Sequence record: OZ196212.1
Strand: one strand, 5' to 3'
DNA length: 64,000 nucleotides
A model generated the notes under the pieces. That model did no database searches, was not told where the DNA came from, and saw nothing but the letters and a program-made list of their open reading frames with translations. Position numbers and translations under genes: made by a program. Shown in pieces: positions 15,296 to 30,146 of this stretch; position 1 is the stretch's first letter; each line of letters opens with the position of its first letter.

Positions 15296-16729
15296 TTATA
15301 AAGCGTATCGGTCGACACCGACAGTCTTCAGCATGATTTTCACTGGCTCAAGCTCACCACCCAACAGCGACGTTAGAATTGAAGGGCTGCAACCCGACAC
15401 TAACGCTGTGTTCGCTTCACCTGATTTAACAGGCACGTTGTCTAGACGACCACGCAAGTTCCAGAACACTAGTTGCGGCATTTCGTAGCCCGCGTTCGCA
15501 TACATGACTTTGATTGCATCGAAGTTCGTAGTGTTACGAGTATGCCAGCCACCGCCAGTACGAGCTTGATCGAATTCCATATCGCTCATGATAAGCAATT
15601 TGGTTGGCATTTCGTCTTGCGACAAGTTTGCCGTACGAGCGCGTTCAAGAAGAACTTCGAAGCATCGTGTGATGTTCGTGCTCATATCTTCGCCAGATCG
15701 TTGCATGTTGTCAAGACGCGACTTCAAGCTATCACCCGTCAACTTGTGAAAGTGCGGATCACTTGAGAACGAAATGAATTGATCTTTGAAGATACCCTCA
15801 TTACGTTCAGCGACGTAGATGCCAAGAGACATCGCAACTTCTTTACAAGTCACACTACCACCGTGTTCACCGTTGATACCACAGCCCATAGAGCCAGAAA
15901 CATCAACAACTGGAATCACGCGCTCGTCAGAGCCTTCCATGTAGTTCGGTAGAGCTTTCCATTGCTCATTTGCAACACGATGGTCACCCATTTTAACGCT
16001 GCGAACAACATCGTATGGGTAAACAGCACCTGCATTGATCTTCGCTTCACCTTTCACAAGCGATGTGATGTACTCACCGTATGCAGATTCAGCGTTACGA
16101 CCGAATGCTTTCTGATAGCGTGCAGACGCTACAGATGGCAGTTTGCCGAACTCGATCTCGCCCCAATTACGAGCACACATCTTCTGTTCAACAGTGTCAG
16201 ACAAAAGAGAGATCACTTTACGCCACTGCTTCGCGTTTACACCAATCGACTTGATTGTGCGCTTGAACACGACTGCGTTTTTGCTGCGCTCACGAGGAAA
16301 CCACTTAGCAGCAAGCGCGTTTTTGTCATTGACAATCGCGTGTGTCCACAGAGTGATAGCATCAGCTTCAAGAGAAGTACCGAACGCAGATACTAAGTCA
16401 TCGAAACGACCAAGTTCTGGGATCTTGCGCATAACTAGACGCGCTACTTCTGGTTGTTCTTTACACAGACGTGCAAAGATTTTGCGGAAAGTACCGCGCT
16501 CACCTGCACCGCCACGCACGTCGCGAGACCATAGCAAGATGCGAGTTGCAAGCTCAGGGTTTTCACCGAATGCGCGATTAAACGCAGTTAGTGACTGATC
16601 ATTACCGCGCATAGCGCCGATAGTGAAGAACAAGTTTAGACACTCGTTACCCGAAGTGCTGTGTGTTACTGCACCGTTTGCTGTACGTGAATCGTTAGAT
16701 TGCATAGCGTTCATAAATAAACTAGTCAT
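15296..16729 (-). CDS. DUF2828 plus vWA domain protein (TROVE/Ro60-like architecture)
   Basis: TANGAVTHSTSG..LNLFF, RDVRGGAGER, LAAKWFPRE, GAVYPYDVV, MIDAS DVSGSM and SDMEFD; ATG 16729 has a GGAG RBS. Confidence 0.85.
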   Translation of the reverse strand: MTSLFMNAMQSNDSRTANGAVTHSTSGNECLNLFFTIGAMRGNDQSLTAFNRAFGENPELATRILLWSRDVRGGAGERGTFRKIFARLCKEQPEVARLVMRKIPELGRFDDLVSAFGTSLEADAITLWTHAIVNDKNALAAKWFPRERSKNAVVFKRTIKSIGVNAKQWRKVISLLSDTVEQKMCARNWGEIEFGKLPSVASARYQKAFGRNAESAYGEYITSLVKGEAKINAGAVYPYDVVRSVKMGDHRVANEQWKALPNYMEGSDERVIPVVDVSGSMGCGINGEHGGSVTCKEVAMSLGIYVAERNEGIFKDQFISFSSDPHFHKLTGDSLKSRLDNMQRSGEDMSTNITRCFEVLLERARTANLSQDEMPTKLLIMSDMEFDQARTGGGWHTRNTTNFDAIKVMYANAGYEMPQLVFWNLRGRLDNVPVKSGEANTALVSGCSPSILTSLLGGELEPVKIMLKTVGVDRYAL

Positions 16730-16765
16730 TGCTGTAAGCTCCAAATATCAAGGATCAGAAAAATA

Positions 16766-17356
16766 ATGTTTCATATTGTATATCAAATAACAAATTTAAT
16801 AAACAACAAAATTTACGTCGGTAAGCATTCAACCGAAAACATTCATGACGAATACATGGGTTCGGGAAAGCTTTTGCTCAGAGCCATTAAAAAGTATGGC
16901 AAGGAGAATTTCACAAAAGACATACTGTTCGTATCATTAGACGAAAAGGATGCATATAAAGCAGAACATGAGATCGTGAATGAAGATTTTGTTCTCCGTG
17001 AAGACACATATAATCTCAAAGTTGGCGGTCTTGGTGGATCATCAGGAATAGAATCTCCATGCAAAGGTCGTCAACTGAGTGAAGATACTAAACTAAAAAT
17101 GAGAAAAAGTAAACAATTTTCTCAAAAACATTTAGATTATCTCTCAACTAAATTATCTGAGTACAACAAATCTAGACAAGGTGTTCAAAGAGACGATCTA
17201 AAGGGTAACTCAAACCCAATGCATCGAGGTAATTGGCATACACCCCACGGAATATTTGAAACATCAAGCGAAGCAGCGTGTGCCATAAAATGTAGTCAAT
17301 CAACAATTGTTAGACGTTGCAAAAATCCAAATTTTGAGGATTGGTACATCAAATAA
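16766..17356 (+). mobile_element. free-standing GIY-YIG homing endonuclease (Seg-like)
   Basis: IVYQITNLINNKIYVGKH...YMGSG; AT-rich; opposite orientation to its neighbours. Confidence 0.85.
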
Positions 17357-17665
17357 CTATCGTTGTCTGTGCAACGATGTGCCATTCTTATGAATTTCGA
17401 TCAGAATCGTGCCGCCAGTTTCGTAGTTCGTACGAACAGAACGATAGTCGTATTTCTCAAAGAAGTTGCGAATAATAGTCGCACCTTTCTTATCAGTATC
17501 GGTAAGATGCACATCAACTTTGATGCGAATCGGGAAATCTGCGTTATTCTTGACAGCCGCCATGAATTCGCGTTCGCACTGCTTAGTGTAGTGCTCAGAA
17601 AGAACGCGACGTTCTTCTAGCACTCGCTCTTCGATGTTTTTACGTAGCTCGTCATGTTTAATCAT
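17357..17665 (-). CDS. hypothetical protein
   Basis: MIKHDELRK start inside the track ORF. Confidence 0.65.
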   Translation of the reverse strand: MIKHDELRKNIEERVLEERRVLSEHYTKQCEREFMAAVKNNADFPIRIKVDVHLTDTDKKGATIIRNFFEKYDYRSVRTNYETGGTILIEIHKNGTSLHRQR

Positions 17666-17667
17666 AA

Positions 17668-17994
17668 TTAAGAACCGTGATTTTTGTTGATAGTTAGTGT
17701 AACGTATGAATACGAACAAGAATTGTATTCACGCGGGTCAGAATCAGTGCGACCGAACTCGGCAGTGAAGTTATTAAACCCCTCTTTGCGCATAAGCTCT
17801 TTGATGATCGTCATGAACTGCGAGTTTGCTTCTGTTTGACTCTTCAATGTCACTTGAACAGTCACAGGAAACGCATAGCCATTCACTGAGTTGATTCGTT
17901 TCTCGAACGATTTGCGCATATCGCGACCAAACTCTTCCATGCGAGTCGTCTTGTTGTTCTCAACGCGTTCGACTAGTTGTTCGTATAAACTCAT
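17668..17994 (-). CDS. hypothetical protein
   Basis: MSLYEQL start, tightly packed operon. Confidence 0.65.
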   Translation of the reverse strand: MSLYEQLVERVENNKTTRMEEFGRDMRKSFEKRINSVNGYAFPVTVQVTLKSQTEANSQFMTIIKELMRKEGFNNFTAEFGRTDSDPREYNSCSYSYVTLTINKNHGS

Positions 17995-17995
17995 A

Positions 17996-18295
17996 TTACA
18001 CCCCAAGAACATTTGGCAATTGCGAAATGGTATATGTGCTTTCTTGCACACGACCGCGAAACTTCACAAGCATACGATGACTGAAGTCGTCTGGGTGCTC
18101 ATCTAAAAGATCAGCATACTTCCACAAGCCACATTCATTGCGCATACTCTGACCGATTGAGTGATGATACACTGCTAAATCAGATTCATCAGCAAGAAAC
18201 GCTTCACGATGCTCTTTCGGAGTATCTTGCCAGATGCCTTTTAACCAACGCTGACAGTGCGCTTCTAAGATCTTTTTAACAATTGCAGTTTTCAT
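17996..18295 (-). CDS. hypothetical protein
   Basis: coupled ORF. Confidence 0.65.
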   Translation of the reverse strand: MKTAIVKKILEAHCQRWLKGIWQDTPKEHREAFLADESDLAVYHHSIGQSMRNECGLWKYADLLDEHPDDFSHRMLVKFRGRVQESTYTISQLPNVLGV

Positions 18296-18660
18296 TGATA
18301 GTCCTTAATGTCGTTGTCGAAGTGACGAATGCACGAGCTATCAAGTCTCGGGCGATCATCGTCTTCAGTGATTGATGGTAGTGTGTAATTATCGTTGAAC
18401 GGCTGACCGCTTGCTTTAGCGATTTCGTACGCGTCTGCACGATTGAAATACTCACCACAATAGTTGATGAAACCTTGCCCGCGATCACCGAGTTCTTTTC
18501 GATGTTCGATTGTACAGCCCGCTTTCTTCAGTGCTTTCATTACACCAGACATGTTGCGACCGAAGTGACAGCTATCAGCTATCACAAGTTCTTCAGTCGA
18601 ACCATCGGGGTATGTTACGCGTATCGCGTTTGCAGCAGCAGAAATAATGTTTACGTGCAT
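18292..18660 (-). CDS. conserved phage hypothetical protein
   Basis: QGFINYCGEYFNRADAYEIAKASGQ resembles a widespread phage motif. Confidence 0.65.
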   Translation of the reverse strand: MHVNIISAAANAIRVTYPDGSTEELVIADSCHFGRNMSGVMKALKKAGCTIEHRKELGDRGQGFINYCGEYFNRADAYEIAKASGQPFNDNYTLPSITEDDDRPRLDSSCIRHFDNDIKDYQ

Positions 18661-19007
18661 GTATCGAGCCTCATAAAAATGTTACCGATTTTCTTGTACT
18701 GTTTAGACGCCATGATCATGTTCGTCATCTTCAAGTTACCGACCGGATTGCTCGTTACAAGAACAATCGTGTACGGATAATTGCGATGATCCATAGCGTG
18801 TGATAGAATATCGCTTCCCTCTTTGCCGACTACATCACCGAGATCATTGTCCATTAGCAACGTAATGTCAGTCAAGTTCGTGTGCTTCACGAAATTCATT
18901 CCCTGTTCGAACGTTCGAAGTGTCAGCTTTTGAGCTGCATTCACTGTGTCGTTCGTCAACTTGTTGATGTCTCGAAGATCATCAATCAAAATATACATGT
19001 GTTTCAT
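18651..19007 (-). CDS. cyclic-phosphate-processing receiver (cREC)-like protein
   Basis: ILIDDLR...RTFEQG...LMDNDLG...G.DIL. Confidence 0.6.
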   Translation of the reverse strand: MKHMYILIDDLRDINKLTNDTVNAAQKLTLRTFEQGMNFVKHTNLTDITLLMDNDLGDVVGKEGSDILSHAMDHRNYPYTIVLVTSNPVGNLKMTNMIMASKQYKKIGNIFMRLDTCT

Positions 19008-19255
19008 TACACAACCTCTAACCAATATGCTAATTCATTTGCTGAAGCTAAAGCAGGCGTATAAGAAATCCAGTAGTCTAGATTCTGAGTCATCGACTCA
19101 AGATAGCAATACTCTGAGTCTGCGCTGAAACGATAAATAAACTCATCGTCTTTATACGCATCGACCACTTTAGAACGAGGATTGACTTTAACATCGAACC
19201 CCGCGTTCTTAAACAACGCAATTGCTGTCTCGTGTTCTGCTTCAAGTAGCGTCAT
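19007..19255 (-). CDS. hypothetical protein
   Basis: MTLLEAEH start, coupled ORF. Confidence 0.6.
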   Translation of the reverse strand: MTLLEAEHETAIALFKNAGFDVKVNPRSKVVDAYKDDEFIYRFSADSEYCYLESMTQNLDYWISYTPALASANELAYWLEVV

Positions 19256-19314
19256 ATTATTCTCAGTAGTTGTTTTGATAAATACAAGATACAGAAAAAC
19301 TATACGAGTGTCAA

Positions 19315-19683: not shown

Positions 19684-19717
19684 ACCAAAAAAAGCCCGCT
19701 AAATGCGGGCTTTGTCG

Positions 19718-19930: not shown

Positions 19931-20030
19931 GATTGTTACCTCTAGGTTATTAGACATAAAGGCGAGGTCGGGACTCGAACCCAAACATTGCACCATTCTC
20001 ACCATCGAGAAAGTTACACCATCTTACAGC

Positions 20031-20479: not shown

Positions 20480-20510
20480 GTGAGTTCTCCATTGTTGTAG
20501 TTAAATGTAT

Positions 20511-20977: not shown

Positions 20978-20990
20978 CATCGTGCATAAA

Positions 20991-21182
20991 CAGACATTCG
21001 TGAACAGTTTTAAAGTCTTTCGCATTAATCACATTTGACTTTCATGTTTAACGATACATGAATCCCTACCAACAAGTTGATAGTCGTACCTTCGAGTTTA
21101 TTGCTTTAAGTCACCGAGAATGCGGCTATGCGTTACTCTATCTCTTATTTAAGTTTTGTTAGTTGGTTGCTGTACAATGTCT
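20991..21182 (-). ncRNA. structured RNA closed by a CAGCAA-motif stem (element A)
   Basis: AGACATT-GTACAGCAA...ACG-AATGTCT-G; internal hairpins. Confidence 0.65.
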
Positions 21183-21192
21183 TTGCAAAATT

Positions 21193-21281
21193 TGGCGGAG
21201 ATACTGGGAGTCGAACCCAGAGAACGCTATTAACGTCCGACACCTTAGCAGGGTGCTGTCATACCATTAGACCATATCTCC
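21193..21281 (-). tRNA. tRNA-Ser(GCT)
   Basis: cloverleaf, long variable arm, CCA. Confidence 0.95.
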
Positions 21282-21418
21282 AGTTCGGAATGCTGCTCTC
21301 ATTCTCAACTACATATTTGCTCTTATCGCTGCCGTGTAGTACGAGCTTCGCAGGTTCGCTTTCGATAATTTTAAGAGCAGGGCGACTCATACCAACTCTA
21401 TTCAAGCGAACTTGAATT

Positions 21419-21496
21419 TGGTGCCCAACCCGAGATTCGAACTCGGAACTTCTAGCGTTTGAAACTAGCGACTCTGCCAGATTGGCCTAGTTGGGC
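21419..21496 (-). tRNA. tRNA-Leu(CAA), short variable arm
   Basis: cloverleaf, CCA. Confidence 0.9.
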
Positions 21497-21502
21497 AATG
21501 TT

Positions 21503-21579
21503 TGGTACGCGTGGGCGGATTCGAACCGCCATCCCTGAGATTTTAAGCCTCATGCCTCTGCCAATTGGACCACACGCGC
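21503..21579 (-). tRNA. tRNA-Leu(TAA)
   Basis: cloverleaf, CCA. Confidence 0.93.
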
Positions 21580-21581
21580 AT

Positions 21582-21655
21582 TGGAGCTCGTACACAGAAT
21601 CGAACTGTGACCAAGTGATTTGCAATCACTTATACTACCGTTATACGATACGAGC
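21582..21655 (-). tRNA. tRNA-Cys(GCA)
   Basis: cloverleaf, U73, CCA. Confidence 0.93.
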
Positions 21656-21665
21656 AAATGTACTT

Positions 21666-21742
21666 TGGGGTGACAGACGGGGATCGAACCCGCATTTTCC
21701 GGAATCACAACCCGGAGGTATTTCCACTTCACCCACTGCCAC
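21666..21742 (-). tRNA. tRNA-His(GTG)
   Basis: cloverleaf, C73, CCA. Confidence 0.92.
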
Positions 21743-21813
21743 ACCAAAGTACACTCTGGGACATATAACGTTTATCAACCGGACTCATTTACGTGGGTCA
21801 TTCGAGCAAAGCA

Positions 21814-22059
21814 CTACTTTGCTAGTAAGTTTTCTTTCTTGAGATATATACTATCACTTGAGAGTTCGCGAGTAAACATATTTCTGAAATAAATTTGCAC
21901 ATCGTCTTCAGTCGTGTTCGACTCAATTTTCTGCGCTAATTCGAGAATTTTGCTTCGCTTGTATCCCTTTCGCCAACAGTCAAACATCAGTTTGTCCATT
22001 TCTTTCAGTTTTTCGACCTGATTCGAGTGTACATATTCGCGTGTTTCAAGTAATGACAT
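21814..22059 (-). CDS. hypothetical protein
   Basis: MSLLETRE start; the longer track ORF overlaps tRNA-Val. Confidence 0.6.
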   Translation of the reverse strand: MSLLETREYVHSNQVEKLKEMDKLMFDCWRKGYKRSKILELAQKIESNTTEDDVQIYFRNMFTRELSSDSIYLKKENLLAK

Positions 22060-22079
22060 AGTATATTGCTCATAAAGAA

Positions 22080-22154
22080 TGGTAGTCCCTGAGAATTTCG
22101 AAATCTCGACCTTCGCCATGTAAAAGCGGTGCTCTGCCTCTGAGCTAAGGGACT
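22080..22154 (-). tRNA. tRNA-Val(TAC)
   Basis: cloverleaf, CCA. Confidence 0.9.
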
Positions 22155-22159
22155 ATAAT

Positions 22160-22235
22160 TGGAACGTGTAACGAGATTCGAACTCGTACCTTCGGTTTGG
22201 AAGACCGTAATGCTACCGTTAAACACCATACACGC
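22160..22235 (-). tRNA. tRNA-Gly(TCC)
   Basis: cloverleaf, U73, CCA. Confidence 0.93.
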
Positions 22236-22527
22236 ATTGTTAATCAGACGCATTGAACAAGTCTTGAATTGCTTTCAAGTTGCTCAACTCTACTTCAAGT
22301 GTTCTTATAAAGAACGGGTTAGTCTCTACAGAGAGACGATATTCAACATCGCGAATGAATCGACCGATGTTGCCCTTGCTTAGTGTAAAGTAGTCATGCT
22401 TCTTTCTCTTCGTTTGAGGTTAGAATTAGATGAACGTGTTCGTTAACTTCTTGCTCAATCTGCCATTGTTCATAGACATATTCAGCATACAAAAGTGTTT
22501 CGTACATAATTCACCTTTCTTAAAATG

Positions 22528-22604
22528 TGGTAGTGACTCTGAGGTTCGAACTCAGTACCAGCGGCGTATGAAACCACGACTTTACCATCATAAGCTAAGT
22601 CACC
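22528..22604 (-). tRNA. tRNA-Met(CAT), elongator-like
   Basis: cloverleaf, CCA. Confidence 0.85.
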
Positions 22605-22608
22605 AAAG

Positions 22609-23045
22609 CAGATATTAACGTATTTAATCAGCACACGGGCTTGACACCACATTGTTTGTGGTCTACGTGAAGAACCTCTGCACAACAATCCCGCTCTAAT
22701 TGCGTTATGTGGTGACTGTCACGAGGAATCTAGTCTTCTTTAAGTGCCTTTCGGCTGTAATAAAGTACAGACAATAACGAAGTGTTTTTTCGTCTTTTAC
22801 ATAAATCGCAGTTGACTATCTTGTTACTCTAACAAGCAAGTATCGACTACCTCAGCGTCGCGCCTAGACTGTGTATTTCTACACGCCACATCTTTCGTTA
22901 CAAGTCTCGACCTAGCACGTTGTTGCTGTGCTGAACGTCTCGAACCCACGCTAAGACCTAATCATTGTTTTAGTAGATTAGTAGTTTGGTTGCTGCATAT
23001 TGTCTTACGTGACAGTCAAACACACAATGCCGAAACAATATGCCG
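22609..23045 (-). ncRNA. large nested structured RNA containing a YrlA-like module (element B, 22768-23005)
   Basis: AGACAATA/TATTGTCT stem with GCAGCAA; 10-bp inverted repeat 23008-23017/22714-22723; T-loop GGTTCGAG. Confidence 0.55.
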
Positions 23046-23100
23046 AGACGTTCACGCTCTTATTTTTCAAGTTCACACTATCGTAGTGACTCTCGTGATA

Positions 23101-23176
23101 TGGCATCCCCAGAAAGATTTGAACTTTCAACCCCGAATTTAGAAGATTCGTGCTCTTCCAATTGAGCTATGAGGAC
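23101..23176 (-). tRNA. tRNA-Arg(TCT)
   Basis: cloverleaf, CCA. Confidence 0.9.
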
Positions 23177-23252
23177 ATCAATAAGATTCGAACCATAAGA
23201 TCTTGTGACACGATGGTAGTAAAGAGAGTGTCTATCTCATGTGTTCGAAATT

Positions 23253-23328
23253 TGGTGGAGCTTGAGGGTTACGATCCCTCTACTTCTCCGTGCAAGGGAG
23301 ATGTTTTACCGATTAGCACTAAAGCCCC
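23253..23328 (-). tRNA. tRNA-Ala(TGC)
   Basis: G3:U70; atypical T-loop ATCGTAA. Confidence 0.9.
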
Positions 23329-23335
23329 AAATTGT

Positions 23336-23548
23336 CTATTTTAACTCTGTGACGCCTATATTTTTCCAATCAAACAGACCATCGACATCTTCAAGCGATT
23401 CGCCAGTCACGTCTGCAATATAAGCAGCGACTTTCGATTCGATTTCGTCATTACTTAGAGACTCATCAACAGTGAAAATCTCTTCGTTGTTATTACCACC
23501 GAATGTGCCGTTAATGTCGTATTCACACCAAACTGATATGTATTTCAT
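23336..23548 (-). CDS. hypothetical acidic protein
   Basis: 70-aa ORF between tRNAs. Confidence 0.65.
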   Translation of the reverse strand: MKYISVWCEYDINGTFGGNNNEEIFTVDESLSNDEIESKVAAYIADVTGESLEDVDGLFDWKNIGVTELK

Positions 23549-23573
23549 AATGTCTCACAAAGTTAATAAAATA

Positions 23574-23648
23574 TGGTGCTCCCGGACAGACTCGAACTGC
23601 CATAACCTGATTACAAAACAGGGATAATCGCCTTTATATTACGGGAGC
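23574..23648 (-). tRNA. tRNA-Thr(TGT)
   Basis: cloverleaf, U31:U39 mismatch, CCA. Confidence 0.85.
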
Positions 23649-23652
23649 GAAA

Positions 23653-23764
23653 CTGAGTGTCGTTTATACCGCGTCTCCAAGACCTGAGATACCAACTCAG
23701 CATGGGATTCGAACCCACCGACGTTTCTTGTATCGAAAGAAATTTTAAATTGCTGTAAACACTC
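23653..23764 (-). ncRNA. circularly permuted tRNA mimic (YrlA-like, element D)
   Basis: GAGTGT-TTACAGCAA...T arm GTGGG-TTCGAAT-CCCAT, then CTGAG/CTCAG hairpin...ACG-ACACTC-AG. Confidence 0.7.
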
Positions 23765-23773
23765 TTAGTATTT

Positions 23774-23847
23774 TGGCTGGGGATAACGGACTCGAACCGA
23801 TACTGCGAAAGTCAAAGTTTCGTATGCTGCCATTACATCAATCCCCT
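23774..23847 (-). tRNA. tRNA-Gln(TTG)
   Basis: cloverleaf, unpaired 1:72, CCA. Confidence 0.9.
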
Positions 23848-23855
23848 ATTGTTCT

Positions 23856-24080
23856 TTAGCGACTCGAATTGATCTCATCGATCATTCGTTTAGCTAGTTT
23901 CGTAGCTAGTGCTTTATCAGCATCGCCAGTTGTTTCTATGTCGTATGCAATTTTACTCACATACTTTGAGTCTAGCGCACCCGCTGATTGTTTAGACCAG
24001 TGATCCTTGACTTTCTGATATTTCGTCATGTCAATCGAATCTTTTGTCGCTTCACCCAAAAATTCTGCTAATGTTTTCAT
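23856..24080 (-). CDS. internal head protein-like, with capsid-targeting sequence
   Basis: MKTLAEFLGEA; perfect TATAAATA at 24110-24117. Confidence 0.75.
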   Translation of the reverse strand: MKTLAEFLGEATKDSIDMTKYQKVKDHWSKQSAGALDSKYVSKIAYDIETTGDADKALATKLAKRMIDEINSSR

Positions 24081-24119
24081 ATCTCTATTCTTATTAAAGT
24101 GTAAAAACATATTTATATG

Positions 24120-24269
24120 CAAGATAACATACACGACGGCGTAAGTAGTCGTTCTTATGTTTAGACTAGAAATCCACGTCACATCATTAATGCTATAATT
24201 GCGCCACTCTCTACTATGAATATGTTATGCATTATTCATGCAGACTCTTCTTGCGCTGTAAATTATCTT
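24120..24269 (-). ncRNA. structured RNA with variant motif (element E)
   Basis: AAGATAA-TTTACAGCG...TTATCTT-G; starts right after the tRNA-Asp CCA. Confidence 0.45.
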
Positions 24270-24345
24270 TGGCGGAACTGACGGGGCTCGAACCCGCTTC
24301 CTTCTCCGTGACAGGGAGGTATGCACCCAGTTACACCTCAGCTCC
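24270..24345 (-). tRNA. tRNA-Asp(GTC)
   Basis: cloverleaf, CCA. Confidence 0.92.
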
Positions 24346-24366
24346 CCAAAGATAACTCTTTGTATT

Positions 24367-24439
24367 AAGACACTGTAATCGTTTGGTTTTTTTCTTCAAA
24401 TAAAAAATACTGGTTTGTTTGCAGAATGATTACTATCTT
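24367..24439 (-). ncRNA. minimal motif RNA (element F)
   Basis: AAGATA-GTAATC-ATTCTGCAAAC...ACG-ATTAC-AG-TGTCTT. Confidence 0.55.
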
Positions 24440-24444
24440 AAATC

Positions 24445-24520
24445 TGGCAGGGACACTCAGATTCGAACTGAGACCAACGGGTTTGGAATCCGTCATGCTG
24501 CCATTAAACACCATGTCCCT
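24445..24520 (-). tRNA. tRNA-Trp(CCA)
   Basis: cloverleaf, CCA end. Confidence 0.9.
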
Positions 24521-24568
24521 ATTGCGTATGAGGTGGCTTAAATCAGTGGTCACTCTCACGCTAAAATT

Positions 24569-24642
24569 TGGTACTCACGAAGAGAATCGAACTCTTATCT
24601 GACGGTTATCAGCCGTCTGCTTTACCGTTAAGCTACGCGAGT
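24569..24642 (-). tRNA. tRNA-Ile(GAT)
   Basis: cloverleaf, CCA. Confidence 0.93.
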
Positions 24643-24707
24643 AAAGTACGCTCGAAAGCGCACAATGTTAATCGGTTAAGTGACTAGCTCGACCAATGTA
24701 ACATATT

Positions 24708-24800
24708 TGGAGGAAGATAACGGAGTCGAACCGTCACCGCGCTACTAACGCAATGGGCTGGTTTTCAAGACCAGTTGCGAACCACATCGCCCTATCTTCC
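24708..24800 (-). tRNA. tRNA-Ser(TGA)
   Basis: cloverleaf, long variable arm. Confidence 0.92.
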
Positions 24801-24805
24801 TTTAA

Positions 24806-25054
24806 TTACTTATGTCGTCCCCAATACATCTTATCAAAGCTGTTTAGGTATTCTTCGACTTTAGCTACATCAGCCGCACTAACAACCCATTCGTTGTCTT
24901 GAGTCGTGCGTTTATTCGCAGGAACTGCTTTAGCGCCTAATTTAGCCATTGTGTTTCTGTGTCGTTCGCGATCCATTGATCCACTAAAAAGTGAGCCAGA
25001 TACGCCGTACGTAACGTCCGTTGCTTCTGCAAGAAACTCTTGTAAAGTTTTCAT
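24806..25054 (-). CDS. internal head protein-like, with capsid-targeting sequence
   Basis: MKTLQEFLAEA (T4 IPII/IPIII: MKTYQEFIAE); CTAAATAT at 25079-25086. Confidence 0.8.
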   Translation of the reverse strand: MKTLQEFLAEATDVTYGVSGSLFSGSMDRERHRNTMAKLGAKAVPANKRTTQDNEWVVSAADVAKVEEYLNSFDKMYWGRHK

Positions 25055-25098
25055 GTTTTCCACCATTGTCTTAAAACAATATTTAGACGTTTAAAAAT

Positions 25099-25175
25099 TG
25101 GATGCGTGGGAGTGGATTCGAACCACTGACCTCCGGCTTATGAGACCGACGAGCTGACCGCTGCTCTACCCCGCA
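25099..25175 (-). tRNA. tRNA-Met(CAT), fMet-like with irregular acceptor stem
   Basis: TGCGGGG/CCCACGCA with an extra A; CAT anticodon. Confidence 0.75.
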
Positions 25176-25179
25176 ATTA

Positions 25180-25365
25180 TTACTTACTGAACTGCACTAC
25201 ACAAGTATCTGATTGATACACTATCGTGCCAGTTGCTTCCGCGTCTATTTGAACGATGCAGCCATTTGCCCCATCTTCACCGCGTGATGCTACATCTTTA
25301 ATCGAAATGCCACTTGAACAAGCTGTCAATGACAGTGCAAGTGCTAATGCTGCTATTGCTTTCAT
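25180..25365 (-). CDS. small lipoprotein
   Basis: MKAIAALALALSLTA-C signal peptide and lipobox. Confidence 0.75.
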   Translation of the reverse strand: MKAIAALALALSLTACSSGISIKDVASRGEDGANGCIVQIDAEATGTIVYQSDTCVVQFSK

Positions 25366-25381
25366 GATGTTCACCTTAATT

Positions 25382-25468
25382 TGGTGGTTCGCCTAGGACT
25401 CGAACCTAGAAGCCCGTTCAAGGGCGAGGGATTTACAATCCCCTGACTTACCATTAGTCTAACGAACC
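25382..25468 (-). tRNA. tRNA-Tyr(GTA)
   Basis: cloverleaf, long variable arm. Confidence 0.93.
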
Positions 25469-25474
25469 AGAATT

Positions 25475-25548
25475 TGGTACTCCGTACGGGAGTCGAACCC
25501 GTCCCTTTAGATTGAAAGTCTAACGATCTACCAATAATCTAACGGAGC
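25475..25548 (-). tRNA. tRNA-Glu(TTC)
   Basis: cloverleaf, CCA. Confidence 0.92.
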
Positions 25549-25672
25549 ATTGAAAAATTATTTATTAGCAAACTAGCAAGTTATCTGAGATAATCATTTA
25601 ACGGGCCCAGCTAGTAAACTAATAGATAATTTCTCATCTAGAGATAGTTTAGTGACTTCTCAACGGTCAATT

Positions 25673-25747
25673 TGGTGCGTCGCCTGAGATTCGAACTCAG
25701 ACTTTTCTGGTTAAAAGCCAGATGTACTACCATTATACGAACGACGC
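25673..25747 (-). tRNA. tRNA-Lys(TTT)
   Basis: cloverleaf, CCA. Confidence 0.93.
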
Positions 25748-25753
25748 ATTAAC

Positions 25754-25828
25754 TGGTGCACCCTCTCGGAATCGAACCGAGCACTGTGGGACTTCACTCC
25801 ACCGCTTTTCCTGATAAGCTAAGGGTAC
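25754..25828 (-). tRNA. tRNA-Phe(GAA), atypical anticodon loop
   Basis: loop GT-GAA-GT; CCA. Confidence 0.8.
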
Positions 25829-25834
25829 TTTATT

Positions 25835-25909
25835 TGGCGGACGTGGAGAATTTCGAAATCTCGACCCCGGTGTTAACAGCACCGCGCTCTGCCTCTGAGC
25901 TACACATCC
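25835..25909 (-). tRNA. tRNA-Asn(GTT)
   Basis: cloverleaf, G73, CCA. Confidence 0.93.
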
Positions 25910-25914
25910 AAATT

Positions 25915-25991
25915 TGGTACGCAGAGAGAGATTCGAACTCTCAACTCCTAGTTTCTAAGACTAGCGGCTCTGCCAATTGGCCTACCTGCGC
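25915..25991 (-). tRNA. tRNA-Leu(TAG)
   Basis: cloverleaf, CCA. Confidence 0.92.
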
Positions 25992-26004
25992 ACTGTGTAA
26001 ATAA

Positions 26005-26079
26005 TGGTCGGAGTAGAAGAATTCGAATCTTCACCGCTCGGCCCCAAACCGACTATGCTGCCATTAACACCATACTCCG
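26005..26079 (-). tRNA. tRNA-Pro(TGG)
   Basis: cloverleaf, CCA. Confidence 0.92.
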
Positions 26080-26107
26080 AAAAACTTTTGTAGAACTTCG
26101 TTCTTAC

Positions 26108-26302
26108 ATTGTACATGATGTTTTCTTCGTTGTAAACATCTTTTTTGAAAAACTTTTCGTTCGTTTTCGAACGTTTAAATGCTTTTCTCTATTGTACATG
26201 ATGTTTTCGTCATTGTAAACATCTTTTTTTAAATCTTTTTGAATGACTTAACGTTTTTGTTTTAACACGTTAATCATATCACTCGTTTACGACTCGTTAA
26301 AC
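26108..26302 (-). promoter_or_regulatory. three tandem sigma70-like early promoters driving the left tRNA block
   Basis: TTTACA-N17-TACAAT at 26136-26108 and 26219-26191 with A-tract UP elements; TTTAAC-N17-TATGAT near 26300. Confidence 0.8.
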
Positions 26303-26378
26303 ACTTATTTGTGAATAATTTCGTTAAATTCTATCATCGCGACAGTAGATAACGAGACACGGTCCTAAACGTATCGTT

Positions 26379-26454
26379 TGGCACTCGATATAAGATTCGA
26401 ACTTATAACCTGCGCCTTCGTAGGACGCTGCTCTTCCAATTGAGCTAATCGAGC
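26379..26454 (-). tRNA. tRNA-Arg(ACG)
   Basis: cloverleaf, CCA. Confidence 0.93.
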
Positions 26455-26537
26455 ATTAAAGCTTGTTTGCTTTCTTTGTTTATCATACTCTGCTTTGAAA
26501 GCATGTTAAACAAAGAATTTCAGTTTATTTCGCCCAT

Positions 26538-26563
26538 AAAAAAGGACGCTAATCTGCGTCCTC
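26538..26563 (-). terminator. intrinsic terminator
   Basis: AGGACGC-AGATTA-GCGTCCTTTTTT. Confidence 0.75.
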
Positions 26564-26823
26564 AAGTATACTTCTATGTTATACTTTCGGACTACATTCG
26601 TGGATCCCATTTCTGGTTGCCAAACGTCGGATTCGCCAGATATACCGATACTGAGCTAAAGCGCATTTCGCTTCGTAAAATCTCAATATGTGTATTAGAA
26701 TGTGGCATCGTGGCTCTCTTTTCGAACGTAAAAATTGTTGTTTTGTTTTTTCTATAATTGTACTTATAAGACTAAAATCGAGGTTTCGTGCGTTTTTTGC
26801 AAAAAACCTCGAAAAAAGTGAAA

Positions 26824-27063
26824 TTATTTTTTAAAGTGCTTTCTTTTATTGCACTCAGCTAAGATTTCATTGTCATAATGATTCTGAAGCTGCTTGAATT
26901 TCTTGTGCTGATCTGGCGTTAGCTCATTCTCATCACGAAGATTTTTCAAGAACCCAAGAGGTTTACGAAACGACTTGCGATACGAGTCTAAACGCTGATC
27001 AGTCAAACCGACTAGTTGTTTAGGCGTTAGCAATGTCTTATTAATGTCAAAGTTCTTACTCAT
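26824..27063 (-). CDS. hypothetical basic protein
   Basis: 79-aa ORF with AAGGGG RBS. Confidence 0.65.
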   Translation of the reverse strand: MSKNFDINKTLLTPKQLVGLTDQRLDSYRKSFRKPLGFLKNLRDENELTPDQHKKFKQLQNHYDNEILAECNKRKHFKK

Positions 27064-27085
27064 GTGTTACCCCTTGTATTGAAAT

Positions 27086-27200
27086 TGGCTGACCGATGCG
27101 GGACTCGAACCCACGACCACGTGCTTAACAGGCAATTAGAAATGCGGTAGCGATACTTATCAATATCATTTACGTGCTCTACCACTGAGCTAATCGGTCA
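27086..27200 (-). tRNA. tRNA-Asn(GTT)-like RNA with a 38-nt insertion in the anticodon stem
   Basis: D arm, intact CT-GTT-AA loop, T arm, GCCA; insert 27134-27171. Confidence 0.75.
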
Positions 27201-27205
27201 ATTGT

Positions 27206-27449
27206 TTAGTTCGCTTTTGCAGTGCACCGAGCCACCTCAGAATTGATACATTTCGTTTGACGCGCATTCGGATGGTTACGCTTTGCGTCGTGAGTCTGTC
27301 AGCGATGCATGGCATACACACACCCCGTTTCTCACCTACTCTGCCCTACAGACGTTATCTGCTTGGTTAACAATTGCACTCGCATTAGGTATAACATGTC
27401 ACCGTCATCTTCCGGACGATTTCAGTGTATGCACTCAAAAGCGAACTAA
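27206..27449 (-). ncRNA. ~244-nt structured RNA of unknown class
   Basis: ~20-bp terminal helix TTAGTTCGCTTTTG-AGTGCA / TGCACT-GCAAAAGCGAACTAA. Confidence 0.65.
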
Positions 27450-27462
27450 TGTTGATTCTATT

Positions 27463-28011
27463 CTACTTCTCTCGCAATGTAAACAGCAGATTGCGATAAT
27501 CGAAGTTTCGTTTGTTCTTTGTATTGTAGAAGCTAGTCCAGTCGATTGCAACGGGACAATTCTTACTACCGACACGAGCAATGAATATCTCGTGTGTCGC
27601 GCTGTGCTTCGCGTTATAAGCTCTTACTCGTTTTTCATAGTGAGCTATGTATTCTGCACAAGCAGCGTTGTAATCAGCTCTAGAGAACGTCTTACCTTTC
27701 ATAAAGCGTGCATCAAGATACGGACGAATAACCCGAACGCGTTCTCCCGACCATGCCATATTAAAGCTGTTTTCAATTTCACCTAGAATTTGACCAGTCT
27801 TTAAGTTACGGCTCAGTATGACCCAACAGCGTGTACGACGATAGTCTTCAAAACGCATCACCTTAATGTGTGCATTAATGAATTCATCGCGTTTAGCGTT
27901 GCACTCAATGCGTGCTGCACGACGCTGTTCTTCAGTCATCGACTCTCGAACTTCTTTCGGATACAATGTAGCAAAGCGTTTCGGGCAATCTGCCATCGTT
28001 AGCTTTTTCAT
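27463..28011 (-). CDS. hypothetical protein
   Basis: 182-aa basic ORF. Confidence 0.7.
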   Translation of the reverse strand: MKKLTMADCPKRFATLYPKEVRESMTEEQRRAARIECNAKRDEFINAHIKVMRFEDYRRTRCWVILSRNLKTGQILGEIENSFNMAWSGERVRVIRPYLDARFMKGKTFSRADYNAACAEYIAHYEKRVRAYNAKHSATHEIFIARVGSKNCPVAIDWTSFYNTKNKRNFDYRNLLFTLREK

Positions 28012-28217
28012 ATCATACCTCTCTTGCGTTTAAGTTGCGAACGCTCAATTTGATTGAAGACTTGCTTATCTTTTGCTTTATTGCGTCGAGAATTACCCCA
28101 ACGACTTCCAGCACATACACCAAAGCGGTCTTTTTTAAGCTTCTTAGCTAACCACAATGGTACTTCGACACGAGCACGTAAGTAGTGCTTTGCGATGTCT
28201 TTATAAGTCTTGCCCAT
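28008..28217 (-). CDS. hypothetical basic protein
   Basis: GAGG RBS, MGKTYKDI start. Confidence 0.65.
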   Translation of the reverse strand: MGKTYKDIAKHYLRARVEVPLWLAKKLKKDRFGVCAGSRWGNSRRNKAKDKQVFNQIERSQLKRKRGMI

Positions 28218-28230
28218 GATAATTTCCTCT

Positions 28231-28471
28231 TGTTGCCGCTCCGTGGAATCGAACCACGTCAAACACAACACCTCGTCAGCCCAATAAGAGTTTCGAAGTA
28301 AGAGCTTACTAGCACATTAAAGCACGGGGCATTATTTCTCTCAAGCAGTTTTCGACCACCGCGTGAGCTTTCTTATCCCCAGTCCCAGTGATTCAGAACG
28401 AAACATGATAGCGAGTCATGAGTTGAACTAATGTTGGGAAAACACTGCGTATTGTACACCGAGTAAGCGGC
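28231..28471 (-). ncRNA. tmRNA-like RNA (tRNA-like domain closing ~200 nt)
   Basis: GCCGCTT/GAGCGGC acceptor, CGTGG-TTCGATT-CCACG T arm, no D stem. Confidence 0.6.
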
Positions 28472-28485
28472 ATTGTTAATAAACT

Positions 28486-28605
28486 TGGTGCCCTACGTGA
28501 ACGTTGAACGTTTTTCTACTTAGCTTCCATCTACCTCACTCAACGAAGAGCTATAGATTCCGTCAAGGTCTACTTCCACTTGACTAAGCGATTCAAACGT
28601 AGGAC
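28486..28605 (-). ncRNA. 120-nt CCA-ended non-tRNA stable RNA
   Basis: GTCCTACGT/ACGTAGGGC-A-CCA; nested helices; no T arm. Confidence 0.65.
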
Positions 28606-28644
28606 ATATTTTGAAAGTAGTCTCGTAAAACTACTTTGAGAATA

Positions 28645-28722
28645 TGGTGACCCTCGTGGGACTCGAACCCAACTATCTTTCGGTTATGAGCCGACTGCTT
28701 TTACCAGTTAAGCTAAAGGGCC
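28645..28722 (-). tRNA. tRNA-Ile2(CAT, lysidine type)
   Basis: GGCCCTT acceptor like ileX; CT-CAT-AA loop. Confidence 0.8.
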
Positions 28723-28723
28723 A

Positions 28724-29089
28724 TTATGTTTCTAGCCATCTACCAATCTTTGCAGCGAAGATGTTTTCTTCTTCGTTGATTAGCGCAGTCGATTTCATTT
28801 GATGAAACATATCTTGCTTGTGAAGCGTATCAAGTTTGACTGCACATTGCAACAACTCTTTTACGCTTCGCATAATTTCTTCTGAATCAAGCTGCGACGT
28901 TTCAGGATGATAAATCAAATTCTGAAGCACAGCTTCTATGTTGCCGTAACAACCCATACCAATAAAATTGATGATAAGTCGATACTGCATTTCTACTGAG
29001 AATGAACAATGCTTGCGCAAATTGCGCTTAACGACTTCACATACTAGCAACTTCTCTTCGAGTTCTTGCTTTATTGCTGTAAACTTCAT
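28724..29089 (-). CDS. hypothetical protein
   Basis: 121-aa ORF, GAGGTG RBS. Confidence 0.7.
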   Translation of the reverse strand: MKFTAIKQELEEKLLVCEVVKRNLRKHCSFSVEMQYRLIINFIGMGCYGNIEAVLQNLIYHPETSQLDSEEIMRSVKELLQCAVKLDTLHKQDMFHQMKSTALINEEENIFAAKIGRWLET

Positions 29090-29105
29090 TGTTCACCTCT
29101 TAAAA

Positions 29106-29228
29106 TGGTGGAGAGTGCGGGATTCGAACCACGCGGCCAAAAGATTTACTTAGTTAGTGTTTGCAGCATGAATACTTGACAATATTCTGTCAACGTTCTT
29201 TTGCTCTACCAGACTGAGCTAACTCTCC
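29106..29228 (-). ncRNA. CCA-ended tRNA scaffold with motif insert in place of the anticodon loop (T1)
   Basis: GGAGAGT/ACTCTCC-A-CCA, D arm, AAAGA/TCTTT stem enclosing ~52 nt. Confidence 0.7.
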
Positions 29229-29234
29229 ATTTAA

Positions 29235-29374
29235 AACACATTGAGCAGGGTGCAGGATTCGAACCTGCGTCACGATCTTAGAATGATATGCTGTTTGGGT
29301 TGCTGAATACAAGCTATACAACTTGCGTTTATGCTACGTGTGCTAGCCACTACACCAACCCTGCTCAATGTGTT
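29235..29374 (-). ncRNA. tRNA mimic with 17-bp extended acceptor and motif insert (T2)
   Basis: D arm, T arm GCAGG-TTCGAAT-CCTGC, no CCA, ATTCAGCAACC. Confidence 0.75.
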
Positions 29375-29607
29375 CTAGTGCAATGCCATATGAACTCACA
29401 TGGCATCACTGAACCTGTTTTATATTGCCTTAGCTAACCAACACAATCTGAAATCGTGCGCTTTAATAAAGGGAGGGCGTCCCTCTTCGCCAGTTAGCAT
29501 AGATGTGTTGCTATGCACCCATTTGTCAATCATGTCCAAGGCAAACAGAACAATGAATACGAGTGCGAGAAGATATACAATCAAATTGAAACACCTCGCT
29601 AAAAAGT

Positions 29608-29753
29608 TAGAGCATATTGGTCGTGCGTACTAGAATCGAACTAGTCCTACGATCTCCTAATGATATGCGTTATTGGTTGCTGAATACTTACTTGTCAGTA
29701 AGCGTTATGCTACGTGTGCTGCCACTACACCAACGCACGACCAATATGCTCTA
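29608..29753 (-). ncRNA. tRNA mimic with 21-bp extended acceptor and motif insert (T3)
   Basis: paralogous to T2; T arm ACTAG-TTCGATT-CTAGT. Confidence 0.75.
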
Positions 29754-29754
29754 G

Positions 29755-29909
29755 ATTATTTAATTTGCGTGCTACTTGCACGACGACTGAGCGAATTATA
29801 ACTCAGCTAGTTTTTGTTCGAGAACTCGGCGGCTAAGCCTATTCACTGCTTGTCAGAACTTAGAACTGACCTCATGTTTTCATTGCGTCTAACACGCAAA
29901 TTAAATAAT
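29755..29909 (-). ncRNA. 155-nt structured RNA
   Basis: 17-bp terminal helix ATTATTTAATTTGCGTG; internal GTCAG/CTGAC and CTGAG/CTCAG hairpins. Confidence 0.55.
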
Positions 29910-29920
29910 TCTTATCTTCA

Positions 29921-29930
29921 GTAAAGAGCA
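29921..29930 (-). promoter_or_regulatory. boxA-like antitermination site
   Basis: TGCTCTTTAC vs rrn boxA TGCTCTTTAACA, in the leader of the RNA island. Confidence 0.55.
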
Positions 29931-30019
29931 GAAACGATAAGACTAGTCTGTTTAATCAATAGTGTTCATCTTCAAGAAGAGGCGAAAACGATGAACTTAG
30001 TTCGCTTAATCAACTGTGT

Positions 30020-30146
30020 TAATCTTAGCAGCTTTTTCGCTGAAGTCAAACACTTTTTTCAAATTTCTTTCATCGAATCAAGAGTTTGTGTTGCTGTCTC
30101 TCGACTCGATGAAATACATTCTACAGGAAAACAAAGCGAAGTCAAC
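30020..30146 (-). promoter_or_regulatory. two tandem sigma70-like promoters with a motif hairpin (30068-30114) between them
   Basis: TTGACT-N16-TAGAAT and TTGACT-N16-TAAGAT with A-rich UP elements. Confidence 0.7.

Follow-up and report, generated by a model that had tools for sequence, protein, structure and literature searches.

The locus described here raises the question whether a phage protein of the DUF2828 family and a group of small RNAs, which share a short helix and the sequence CAGCAA, could be the two halves of a Ro60/Y-RNA-like particle. The window, i.e. the whole stretch of DNA analysed (64,000 nucleotides (nt) of sequence record OZ196212.1), is DNA of a KVP40-like Vibrio phage; the 14.9 kb region under study (15296 to 30146) matches Vibrio phage D491s and its close relatives with 100% identity, these being T4-like phages of about 253 kb (Straboviridae) within the KVP40 group. 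Ro60/Y-RNA particles have been recognised in animals, some bacteria and a few phages, and their RNA partners have been hard to find beyond a narrow sequence family. Ro60 itself holds a Y RNA on its outer surface, while its central hole takes up the ends of misfolded RNAs. Structured, conserved RNAs are coupled, by strand and by position, to a Ro60-like gene across very distant phages. We put at about 60% the probability that the protein belongs, as a highly diverged member, to the RNA-binding proteins of the Ro60 type, with a ring and a vWA domain, and that the CAGCAA RNAs are its Y-RNA-like partners.

The protein half is encoded by the following gene:

15296..16729, minus strand: Ro60-like gene, 477 amino acids, DUF2828 helical repeats followed by a DUF7788 von Willebrand factor A (vWA) domain with an intact MIDAS (metal ion-dependent adhesion site), by Pfam, PHROG and AlphaFold2 (AF2)/Foldseek

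The open reading frame (ORF) covers 15296-16744 on the minus strand and its likeliest start is the ATG at 16729 (M6 of the ORF), which gives the 477 amino acid product. Pfam assigns DUF7788 (E = 2.8e-46) and DUF2828 (8.3e-26), and the PHROG match is phrog_850, annotated as RNA-binding protein. An AF2 model built from 32 homologues (predicted local distance difference test score 77, predicted template modelling score 0.73) places helices at residues 34-264 and an alpha/beta domain at 276-475. When this model was compared to the PDB with Foldseek, the best eight matches were all Ro60/TROVE proteins, aligned over their full length (about 500-560 columns) with a probability of 1.00, E values of 2e-7 to 5e-6 and template modelling (TM) scores of 0.44-0.62. 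The best is the Ro60 of Thermus phage phiLo (9kop, E = 2.4e-7, TM 0.60), the others being 9l5y, also of phiLo, Xenopus Ro (1yvr, 2i91) and human Ro60 complexes; proteins with a vWA domain only rank after them, at E of about 0.02. The MIDAS residues D281-x-S283-x-S285, T356 and D388 are invariant across the 32 homologues. With Ro60 proteins alone at the top of the structural matches and with an invariant MIDAS, the modelled protein is of Ro60 architecture, its sequence lying beyond the reach of HMMER; a preliminary description of this DNA, made from its letters, had proposed a Ro60-like fold, and the structural matches of the model bear this out. Homologues were found in 710 of 50,697 phage genomes (1.4%), including Escherichia/Salmonella Felixounavirus, phages of Mycobacterium, Listeria, Staphylococcus, Campylobacter, Enterococcus, Bacillus and Aeromonas, and cyanophages, so that hosts from Actinobacteria to Campylobacter and marine bacteria are represented; thousands of metagenomic proteins are further homologues, and those of mycobacteriophages already carry the annotation "Ro-like RNA-binding protein".

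The RNA half lies in the minus-strand tRNA region of the window, where ARAGORN detects 26 tRNA genes between 21193 and 28722. Promoter-like sites are found at 30145, 30049, 28479, 27483, 26509, 26219 and 26136, and the tRNA/RNA array ends at a strong intrinsic terminator (20978-20955). The heptamer CAGCAAC occurs 19 times in the window where 9.3 are expected (none of 100 shuffles reaches 19); six of the copies are minus-strand ones in the interval 21166-30096. At gathering scores, the Rfam ribozyme, riboswitch and small RNA families gave no match in the window; tRNA is the only family found. One RNA module takes two forms in this region. In the linear form the 5' strand of a terminal helix is followed by 1-4 nt and C(A/U)GCAA, and the 3' strand has an A-rich stretch, often ending in ACG, before it and a G after it. 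Four linear RNAs are present, two of which match the strict pattern used for scanning, 5'-AGR-helix(6-10 base pairs (bp))-N1-4-CNGCAA ... helix'-G:

20991..21182, minus strand: linear RNA A, helix AGACATT/AATGTCT, then GUA-CAGCAAC (strict scan match)
22768..23005, minus strand: linear RNA B, helix AGACAATA/TATTGTCT, then UG-CAGCAAC (strict scan match)
23653..23764, minus strand: linear RNA C, helix GAGTGT/ACACTC, then UUA-CAGCAAU (fold, orthologues)
24373..24434, minus strand: mini RNA E, helix GTAATC/GATTAC, then AUU-CUGCAAAC, interior A/U hairpin (orthologues)

All four are conserved in KVP40, nt-1, VS1, 1.081.O, D479 and F86. RNA A, the final RNA ahead of the terminator, is kept in every KVP40-like phage examined, and the orthologues of RNA B in KVP40, nt-1 and VS1 have a 9 bp helix. 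The interior of RNA C holds a T-arm-like hairpin (GTGGGTTCGAATCCCAT) and two more hairpins in a YrlA-like order, with no convincing D arm. Orthologues and paralogues of RNA E in five related phages have covarying stems, the variants being AGCAATC/GATTGCT, AGTAATC/GATTACT, AGAATGT/GCATTCT and TGGATAC/GTATCCA.

In the second form, here called T-type, the acceptor, D and T arms of a tRNA are present and an insert of 38-52 nt replaces the anticodon loop. The insert consists of an A-rich run, a 5-7 bp hairpin capped C-UGAYAA-G, and then N-U-N-C-N-G-C-A(A). Scores below are those of R1, a model of the T-type RNAs:

27086..27199, minus strand: T1, anticodon-arm insert GATAT-TGATAA-GTATC, then GCUA-CCGCA, a degenerate motif (R1 88.2 bits)
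29106..29228, minus strand: T2, 52 nt insert for the anticodon loop, hairpin then CAUG-CUGCAAAC (R1 92.7 bits)
29235..29372, minus strand: T3, 15 bp extended acceptor stem, insert AACG-hairpin-UAUU-CAGCAAC (fold, covariation; R1 111.1 bits at 29241-29364)
29608..29750, minus strand: T4, 18 bp extended acceptor stem, insert AACG-CTTAC-TGACAA-GTAAG-UAUU-CAGCAAC (fold; R1 102.8 bits at 29618-29739)

These RNAs, which are orthologues of tRNA-Pseudo-3/4/5 as annotated by the authors of the KVP40 genome, are not ordinary tRNAs: none of the four has a 7 nt anticodon loop with an anticodon, its place being taken by the conserved hairpin and a C.GCA junction, and the acceptor, D and T stems covary. T1 and T2 match the Rfam tRNA model as over-long copies with 49.1 bits (27090-27199) and 49.8 bits (29109-29228), and reach its gathering score (RF00005) only because the 38-52 nt insert is skipped. 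R1 scores the family at 57-120 bits and ordinary tRNAs at 48 bits or less. In a MAFFT alignment of 25 T-type RNAs from eight phages C.GCA is invariant, and RNAalifold finds 23 pairs; double compensatory substitutions are seen in 22 of them, among which are all those of the inserted hairpin. The motif after the hairpin is UAUU or CAUG followed by C(A/U)GCAA in T2, T3 and T4, and U.C.GCA, read as UACCGCA, in T1. The two forms read alike at the junction (an A-rich run and one helix strand, ..., then its partner strand and U-N-CAGCAA), and it is the far end of the helix that differs, being closed by a loop in the T-type RNAs and formed by the RNA's own ends in the linear ones. The term "permuted copies" of the preliminary description is therefore a fair one; such copies are real in the tRNA-like anticodon arms of T2, T3 and T4, and present in degenerate form in T1.

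In order to see how the module relates to the gene outside the window, 79 + 80 viral contig loci (these, and further loci examined, carry numbers with an L below) were collected with a DUF2828 homologue as the sole criterion. Clade 1 comprises 79 loci with 46-53% identity to the window protein, and clade 2 comprises 80 loci with about 40%. On the strand of the DUF2828 gene the strict scan gave 82 matches in 46 of the 79 loci of clade 1 and 263 matches in 76 of the 80 loci of clade 2, i.e. 345 in total against 18 on the opposite strand (9+9) and about 12 in block-shuffled sequence. With a slightly relaxed 5' end, 51 of the 79 and 76 of the 80 loci, respectively, carry a copy no more than 1.5 kb from the gene. 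In the relaxed scan the first kilobase downstream of the gene holds 56 of 108 matches in clade 1, and the first kilobase upstream holds 142 of 285 in clade 2; the distance from the gene to the nearest copy is fixed, being about 90 nt (lower quartile 91 nt) on the upstream side in one clade and, counted from the stop codon, about 40 nt on the downstream side in the other. A single locus can hold as many as eight copies or more over a span of 10 kb. Since 29 of the 46 tRNA-free loci of clade 1 still carry a copy, the link is to the gene and not to tRNA arrays. The enrichment of the motif near DUF2828 genes of other genomes, which the preliminary description had expected, is therefore present, also where tRNA genes are absent. 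The consensus of 323 distinct copies is UUUU-A-G-G/a-A/u-U-N-N-(N)-U-(U/A)-CAGCAA ... AAAA-N-N-A-U/a-C-C-U-G-U-U, in which the inner 2-3 base pairs vary freely. A rule of the preliminary description, ACG before the 3' strand, holds as a tendency; what is general is an A-rich run before that strand. A strict ACG-hairpin-CAGCAA pattern was rejected as too narrow, since, with a background of about 10, it singled out just L054 and the KVP40-like phages among the first 80 DUF2828 loci.

The reverse test started from the RNAs. In IMG/VR the T-type signature retrieved 37 stretches, nearly all confirmed by R1 at 60-120 bits; a DUF2828 gene lies inside the few kilobases fetched in six of them, and others are on contigs known to encode one. 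The signature of the shortest RNAs (TAGGATNNNTTCAGCAA...ATCCTGTT) retrieved at least 120 stretches, and 25 of the 76 new loci contain a DUF2828 gene, always on the strand of the RNA, despite short flanks; the rate for comparison is the 1.4% of complete phage genomes with the gene. Single loci agree with these counts. Two copies occupy a 240 nt gap upstream of the gene in Campylobacter phage F336, three lie upstream of it in Listeria phage LMTA-34 (L321), and three just downstream of it in the guanine- and cytosine-rich Mycobacterium phage Snenia. In Bas63 (L206) four CAGCAA-helix RNAs, one of them with the YrlA layout, are found among the tRNAs just downstream of gp130 (7753-8589), where they sit in unannotated gaps or under small minus-strand ORFs. 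Two of these ORFs (8430-8582 and 8594-8704) overlap plus-strand CAGCAA RNAs and, given this overlap of the sequences, are probably not genes. The tRNA region of T5 served as a control: the motif is at background level and no DUF2828 homologue was found in the 28 kb examined. The same T5 record (L207) holds, at 8285-12000, eight "stable RNAs with unknown functions", several of which are tRNA-like, without the CAGCAA module.

What the helix carries can be compared with the RNAs of the bacterial Ro60 protein (Rsr), which has YrlA/YrlB partners in Salmonella, Mycobacterium and Deinococcus (Chen et al. 2014, PMC4201824; Rfam RF02553). Across the loci the RNAs range from 33 to about 310 nt. In 49 of the 122 distinct minis of about 55 nt, a stem of 4 bp or more closes a 7 nt loop Y-U-N-N-N-R-A, the signature of an anticodon loop, as against 1.0 expected from shuffles; the "anticodons" are UGU (19), UUU (8), then GUA, GUU, UCU, UGA, GCA and others. 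A T-loop is present in 50 of the 94 mid-size RNAs (76-140 nt). Many of these run from a T arm through a closed acceptor-like hairpin to a D arm, the defining layout of bacterial YrlA, which is clear in L175 (505-616), L165, L142, Snenia (5561-5680) and Bas63 (8462-8589); others run from a D arm through an anticodon arm to a T arm, and in them the CAGCAA helix replaces the acceptor stem. The topology of T1-T4 is opposite to that of YrlA. The Rfam YrlA model spans mid-size RNAs of the relatives end to end with 30.8-39.3 bits (E = 1.8e-5 to 8e-3); its match boundaries agree with the boundaries of the scanned helices, and it places CAGCAA in the 5' internal loop by the terminal helix, the presumed Rsr-binding region of YrlA. 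A YrlA match of 28.2 bits in the window was discarded as chimeric, since it joins T3's T arm to T2's D arm. Apart from tRNA, no Rfam family reaches its own threshold in the DUF2828 loci. A leader/trailer pairing round ordinary tRNAs is ruled out for the CAGCAA helix, as only one of 358 helices encloses a tRNA. That one (L194, 5187-5293) encloses a complete tRNA-Arg UCU, as if captured as payload. Other tRNA-like RNA families are found at DUF2828 loci in L026-L028 (about 13.2-14.4 kb), L068 (12279-12394) and L052 (12336-12619); they have common acceptor, D and T arms (e.g. AGTCCTGTGGCGGAA...ACAGGTTCGAATCCTGTCAGGACTAC) and variable anticodon-arm inserts of 30-118 nt, without the T-type signature.

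The likeness to bacterial Rsr loci includes a ring-plus-vWA protein gene beside small RNAs, several RNAs per locus, a terminal helix with a conserved internal loop, in many mid-size RNAs of the relatives the tRNA-like T arm, closed acceptor-like hairpin and D arm, and at times RNA-repair genes nearby (RtcB by the Listeria phage homologue). The phage system differs in that its protein gives no detectable TROVE sequence match, that its handle is CAGCAA with an A-rich strand whereas the YrlA loop is AAUGC / AAACUUGUC, that its payloads are far more varied, including minis with only an anticodon loop and non-permuted tRNA bodies, and in the higher copy number. Phage-encoded Ro60 rings with Y-like RNAs have been described: Thermus phage phiLo carries phiRo60 with Yrl1 and Yrl2 encoded just upstream (PMC12135203; PDB 9KOP, 9L5Y), and this is the best structural match of our model, with 14-16% identity in the structural alignment. 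In distinction to the window protein, the proteins of the pairs of phiLo, mycobacteriophage, CcrColossus and Bacillus phage G are recognisable TROVE proteins, and their RNAs are picked by a "CGAA" bulge motif and not by CAGCAA. Also close is gp130 of Bas63 (JohannRWettstein), which is reported to be structurally Ro60-like, to be encoded directly upstream of the tRNA array and to counter the Ppl defence (preprint 10.1101/2024.10.10.617714); it is a true homologue of the 477 amino acid protein (45% identity). Its authors guessed that some of the neighbouring "tRNA genes" are Y RNAs and left the RNAs unidentified, whereas four are located here. The "tRNA-Pseudo-1..5" of KVP40 and the stable RNAs of T5 (RNA1, RNA2, RNA3, RNAI, RNAIII...) are likewise extra small, partly tRNA-like RNAs of phage tRNA arrays, and, unlike in the reading given here, they have been annotated as defective tRNAs or left unexplained.

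The genes round the Ro60-like gene and the RNA array include four that bear on function or on the alternatives weighed below:

14722..15246, minus strand: RNase H-like protein (PF04308), candidate nuclease partner, directly downstream of the Ro60-like gene (Pfam 1.1e-17)
16766..17356, plus strand: GIY-YIG (SegE-like) homing endonuclease gene, opposite in strand to the Ro60-like gene and inserted directly upstream of it
18651..19025, minus strand: cREC_REC "cyclic-phosphate processing receiver" protein, 124 amino acids (PF20274 1.2e-12)
30408..30863, minus strand: Acb1, a 2H phosphoesterase against the cyclic oligonucleotide-based anti-phage signalling system (CBASS), 151 amino acids (Pfam 9.5e-45), annotated "RNA ligase / 57B" in relatives

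A PF04308 homologue is found within a few kilobases of the DUF2828 gene in 37 of the 80 loci of one clade and in one of the 79 of the other, which makes it a partner specific to a clade and not a general one. The GIY-YIG gene is absent from the near-identical relatives K575 and 6E35.1a, in which coverage of the region is only 96%. The cREC_REC ORF lies between the tRNA array and the Ro60-like gene and hints at RNA-end processing; the Acb1 ORF is just upstream of the RNA cluster. In LMTA-34, RtcB ("tRNA splicing ligase") and an HD phosphohydrolase are encoded 1-3 kb downstream of the CAGCAA RNAs and the DUF2828 gene, and a near-threshold ROOL RNA (2473-3024, 88.5 bits with a gathering score of 99.1) lies upstream, less than 1 kb away from the three CAGCAA RNAs and the gene.

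About eleven elements of the RNA family had been listed in the preliminary description, and all are present on the minus strand where it had placed them. A, B, C, E and T1-T4 stand as members. Three others are weak, namely a 4 bp AGCA/TGCT hairpin at 22932-22912 and two doubtful copies:

24121..24269, minus strand: copy D, helix AAGATAA/TTATCTT, motif reads CAGCGCAA (orthologue in phage F86 only)
30068..30114, minus strand: copy F, 5'-terminal hairpin of the transcript with CAGCAAC in the loop (fold, -22.9 kcal/mol)

Copy D deviates in the motif itself. Copy F, for which AGAG/CTCT had been given as the stem, has a layout unlike the family; it is just downstream of the promoter-like site at 30145-30118 and is conserved in F86 and VH1_2019. 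The CAGCAA at 16683, which the preliminary description had noted at the start of the Ro60-like gene, is rejected as an RNA signal, as it encodes the invariant residues T21-A22-N23-G24 of the protein. Four further stretches of the minus strand, the first three of them non-coding, are worth listing. That at 29751-29910 (160 nt, immediately 5' of T4) has a 20 bp closing helix and a minimum free energy (MFE) of -49 kcal/mol (z = -4.6); its GUCAG...CUGAC-AAG-CAGUGAA may be the motif in degenerate form. A candidate structured RNA of 250 nt lies at 27200-27450, 5' of T1 (14 bp helix TTAGTTCGCTTTTG / CAAAAGCGAACTAA, MFE -80 kcal/mol, z = -2.7). The stretch at 28272-28644 (about 370 nt) ends in a T-arm-like hairpin, cgtggttcgattccacg, and that at 29925-30040, after the second promoter-like site, consists of two tandem repeats of about 55 nt (TTGATTAA.C..ACTA.GT...TCGTTT...).

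In the model which we favour, the handle gripped by the protein would be the shared module, a helix of 6-9 bp in which one strand continues in the 3' direction as (U)-N-CAGCAA and the other follows an A-rich run; it would stand where YrlA has its helix and internal loop for Rsr binding. Beyond the handle, each RNA would be an exchangeable, tRNA-mimicking payload: a hairpin resembling an anticodon stem-loop in the minis of about 55 nt, the T-arm/closed acceptor hairpin/D-arm series of the YrlA layout, the D-arm/anticodon-arm/T-arm series, or, in T1-T4, a whole tRNA body with the handle inserted in circularly permuted form at the site of the anticodon loop. Protein and RNAs would form a ribonucleoprotein (RNP), to which the variable payloads would bring targets or partners, in the manner of Y RNAs in Ro60 particles. 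Such an RNP might act on the tRNA or RNA pool during infection, in quality control or repair, or its RNAs might be decoys or sensors against host defences attacking tRNAs or nucleic acids; the neighbouring PF04308 nuclease may cooperate with the RNP in some clades.

Several results weigh against this model. TROVE (PF05731) is not matched by the protein, for which Pfam gives just DUF2828 and DUF7788 at E <= 0.01. HMMER searches against the PDB, with the single sequence or a profile, return armadillo-repeat noise only, apart from TROVE at E = 0.5, in an alignment restricted to the MIDAS stretch. In the window itself the CAGCAA RNAs are not adjacent to the Ro60-like gene, being 4-14 kb upstream of it on the same strand. 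The proposed identity of the T-type and linear junctions rests on a short shared sequence pattern. R1 detects T-type RNAs in just one of 79 and 10 of 80 DUF2828 loci, which rules them out as the general partner and makes them a sub-family. The mini alignment (A5) shows 100% pairing, which is circular since the scanner demanded pairing; strand bias, shuffles and position were therefore used as evidence instead. The asymmetry between G.U and A.C mismatches, which would indicate pairing at the RNA level, is uninformative (10 vs 10). No match in the window or in the relatives reaches the YrlA gathering score of 69 bits, and element C of the window has 12.3 bits with that model.

Four other explanations were considered, each of which is weakened by several of the following: linkage without tRNAs, copy number, strand bias, the internal loop-closed version of the module and the covarying payloads. 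The one that survives best, though we hold it to be unlikely, is that the module is a processing or stability cassette, cut by a host RNase or by the PF04308 nuclease, and that the Ro60-like protein is a neighbour that does not bind it. The position of the module at RNA termini with U-rich flanks (UUUU-AGG...CCUG-UU) would suit such a cassette, as would the interspersion of the RNAs in tRNA arrays, which need processing, and the presence of PF04308 in the window and in nearly half of the loci of one clade. However, 78 of the 79 loci of the other clade have no PF04308, the tightest link is to the DUF2828 gene, beside which the RNA persists in the majority of tRNA-free loci, and helices enclosing a tRNA are next to absent (1 of 358). 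The T-type module, being internal and loop-closed, cannot mark RNA ends.

Still less probable is that the copies near the gene are cis-regulatory elements in its 5' or 3' untranslated region, e.g. for autoregulation, and that the distant copies are by-products. The clade-specific fixed distance of the nearest copy (about 90 nt upstream or 40 nt downstream) is what such elements would show, but eight or more copies over 10 kb, elaborate tRNA-like payloads with YrlA-like layouts, and the permuted copies that KVP40-like phages carry, at 12 kb from the gene, within tRNA-like scaffolds are not. As autoregulation would imply binding of the protein to the motif, this explanation overlaps with the favoured one.

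We give little credit to the idea of a repeat acting at the DNA level, be it the inverted repeats of a mobile element, a recombination site or the target of a homing endonuclease spreading in tRNA regions. Terminal inverted repeats (AGGAT...ATCCT) do enclose a cargo that varies, a genome holds many copies, genes for homing endonucleases are frequent in the neighbourhood (GIY-YIG at 16766-17356, HNH in relatives), and the count of G.U and A.C given above lacks an RNA signature. Against this stand the near-absolute orientation with respect to transcription (345 vs 18), the one-sidedness of CAGCAA, helices which covary and are not mutual copies in phages of hosts from Actinobacteria to Campylobacter, and cargoes that are themselves structured, tRNA-like and covarying. 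The core of a new small self-cleaving ribozyme processing the RNA arrays, which might likewise be short, widespread in phages, outside the known Rfam families and with a few invariant nucleotides by a helix, is the least credible, as there are only some 12 conserved positions, no second conserved helix or pseudoknot, no match to the known Rfam ribozyme families and no obvious cleavage logic in the permuted internal version.

That the DUF2828 family is Ro60-like is already known from annotations and one preprint, and phage pairs of Ro60 and Y-like RNAs are known for canonical TROVE proteins. The remark of the preliminary description that the motif had not been described holds for the RNA, for which none was found in the literature or in Rfam 15, and does not extend to the Ro60-likeness and the guess at Y RNAs, which had been published. 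For the RNA family, the CAGCAA handle, the permuted forms, the anticodon-loop minis and the linkage to the gene, no description was found in Rfam 15 or in the literature searched, which was not exhaustive. The simple searchable signature (helix, U-N-CAGCAA, A-rich return strand) has yielded several hundred candidate partner RNAs in about 240 loci. It puts concrete RNAs in hand for the question of how Bas63 gp130 counters Ppl, indicates that small ORFs called in gaps of tRNA arrays, as in Bas63, may be spurious, and provides natural circular permutations of one putative protein-binding module, useful for structural work.

As protein and RNAs are close together, often adjacent, in diverse phages, the data point to a widespread viral Y-RNA-like system, which would explain the long-annotated "pseudo-tRNAs" of KVP40-like phages. 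Our confidence in any specific role of the RNP is much lower than in the RNP itself. The tRNA arrays, the RtcB of the Listeria phage, cREC_REC, Acb1 and the report on gp130 and Ppl point to RNA quality control and repair or to a tRNA-centred counter-defence; the anticodon-loop mimics suggest decoy or sensor functions, and such mimicry may be a recurrent viral strategy. A further possibility, which we regard as tentative, is that diverse tailed phages, with 710 or more sequenced genomes, share a modular RNP in which a Ro60-like ring holds, by a universal CAGCAA handle, interchangeable tRNA parts that serve as decoys, sensors or repair guides against tRNA-targeting defences. If this were true, the parts on display would be whole tRNA bodies, elbow domains and bare anticodon stem-loops (UGU, UUU, GUA, GUU, UCU), and the "pseudo-tRNAs" of phage tRNA arrays, together with the stable RNAs left unexplained there, would be an anti-defence arsenal and not junk.

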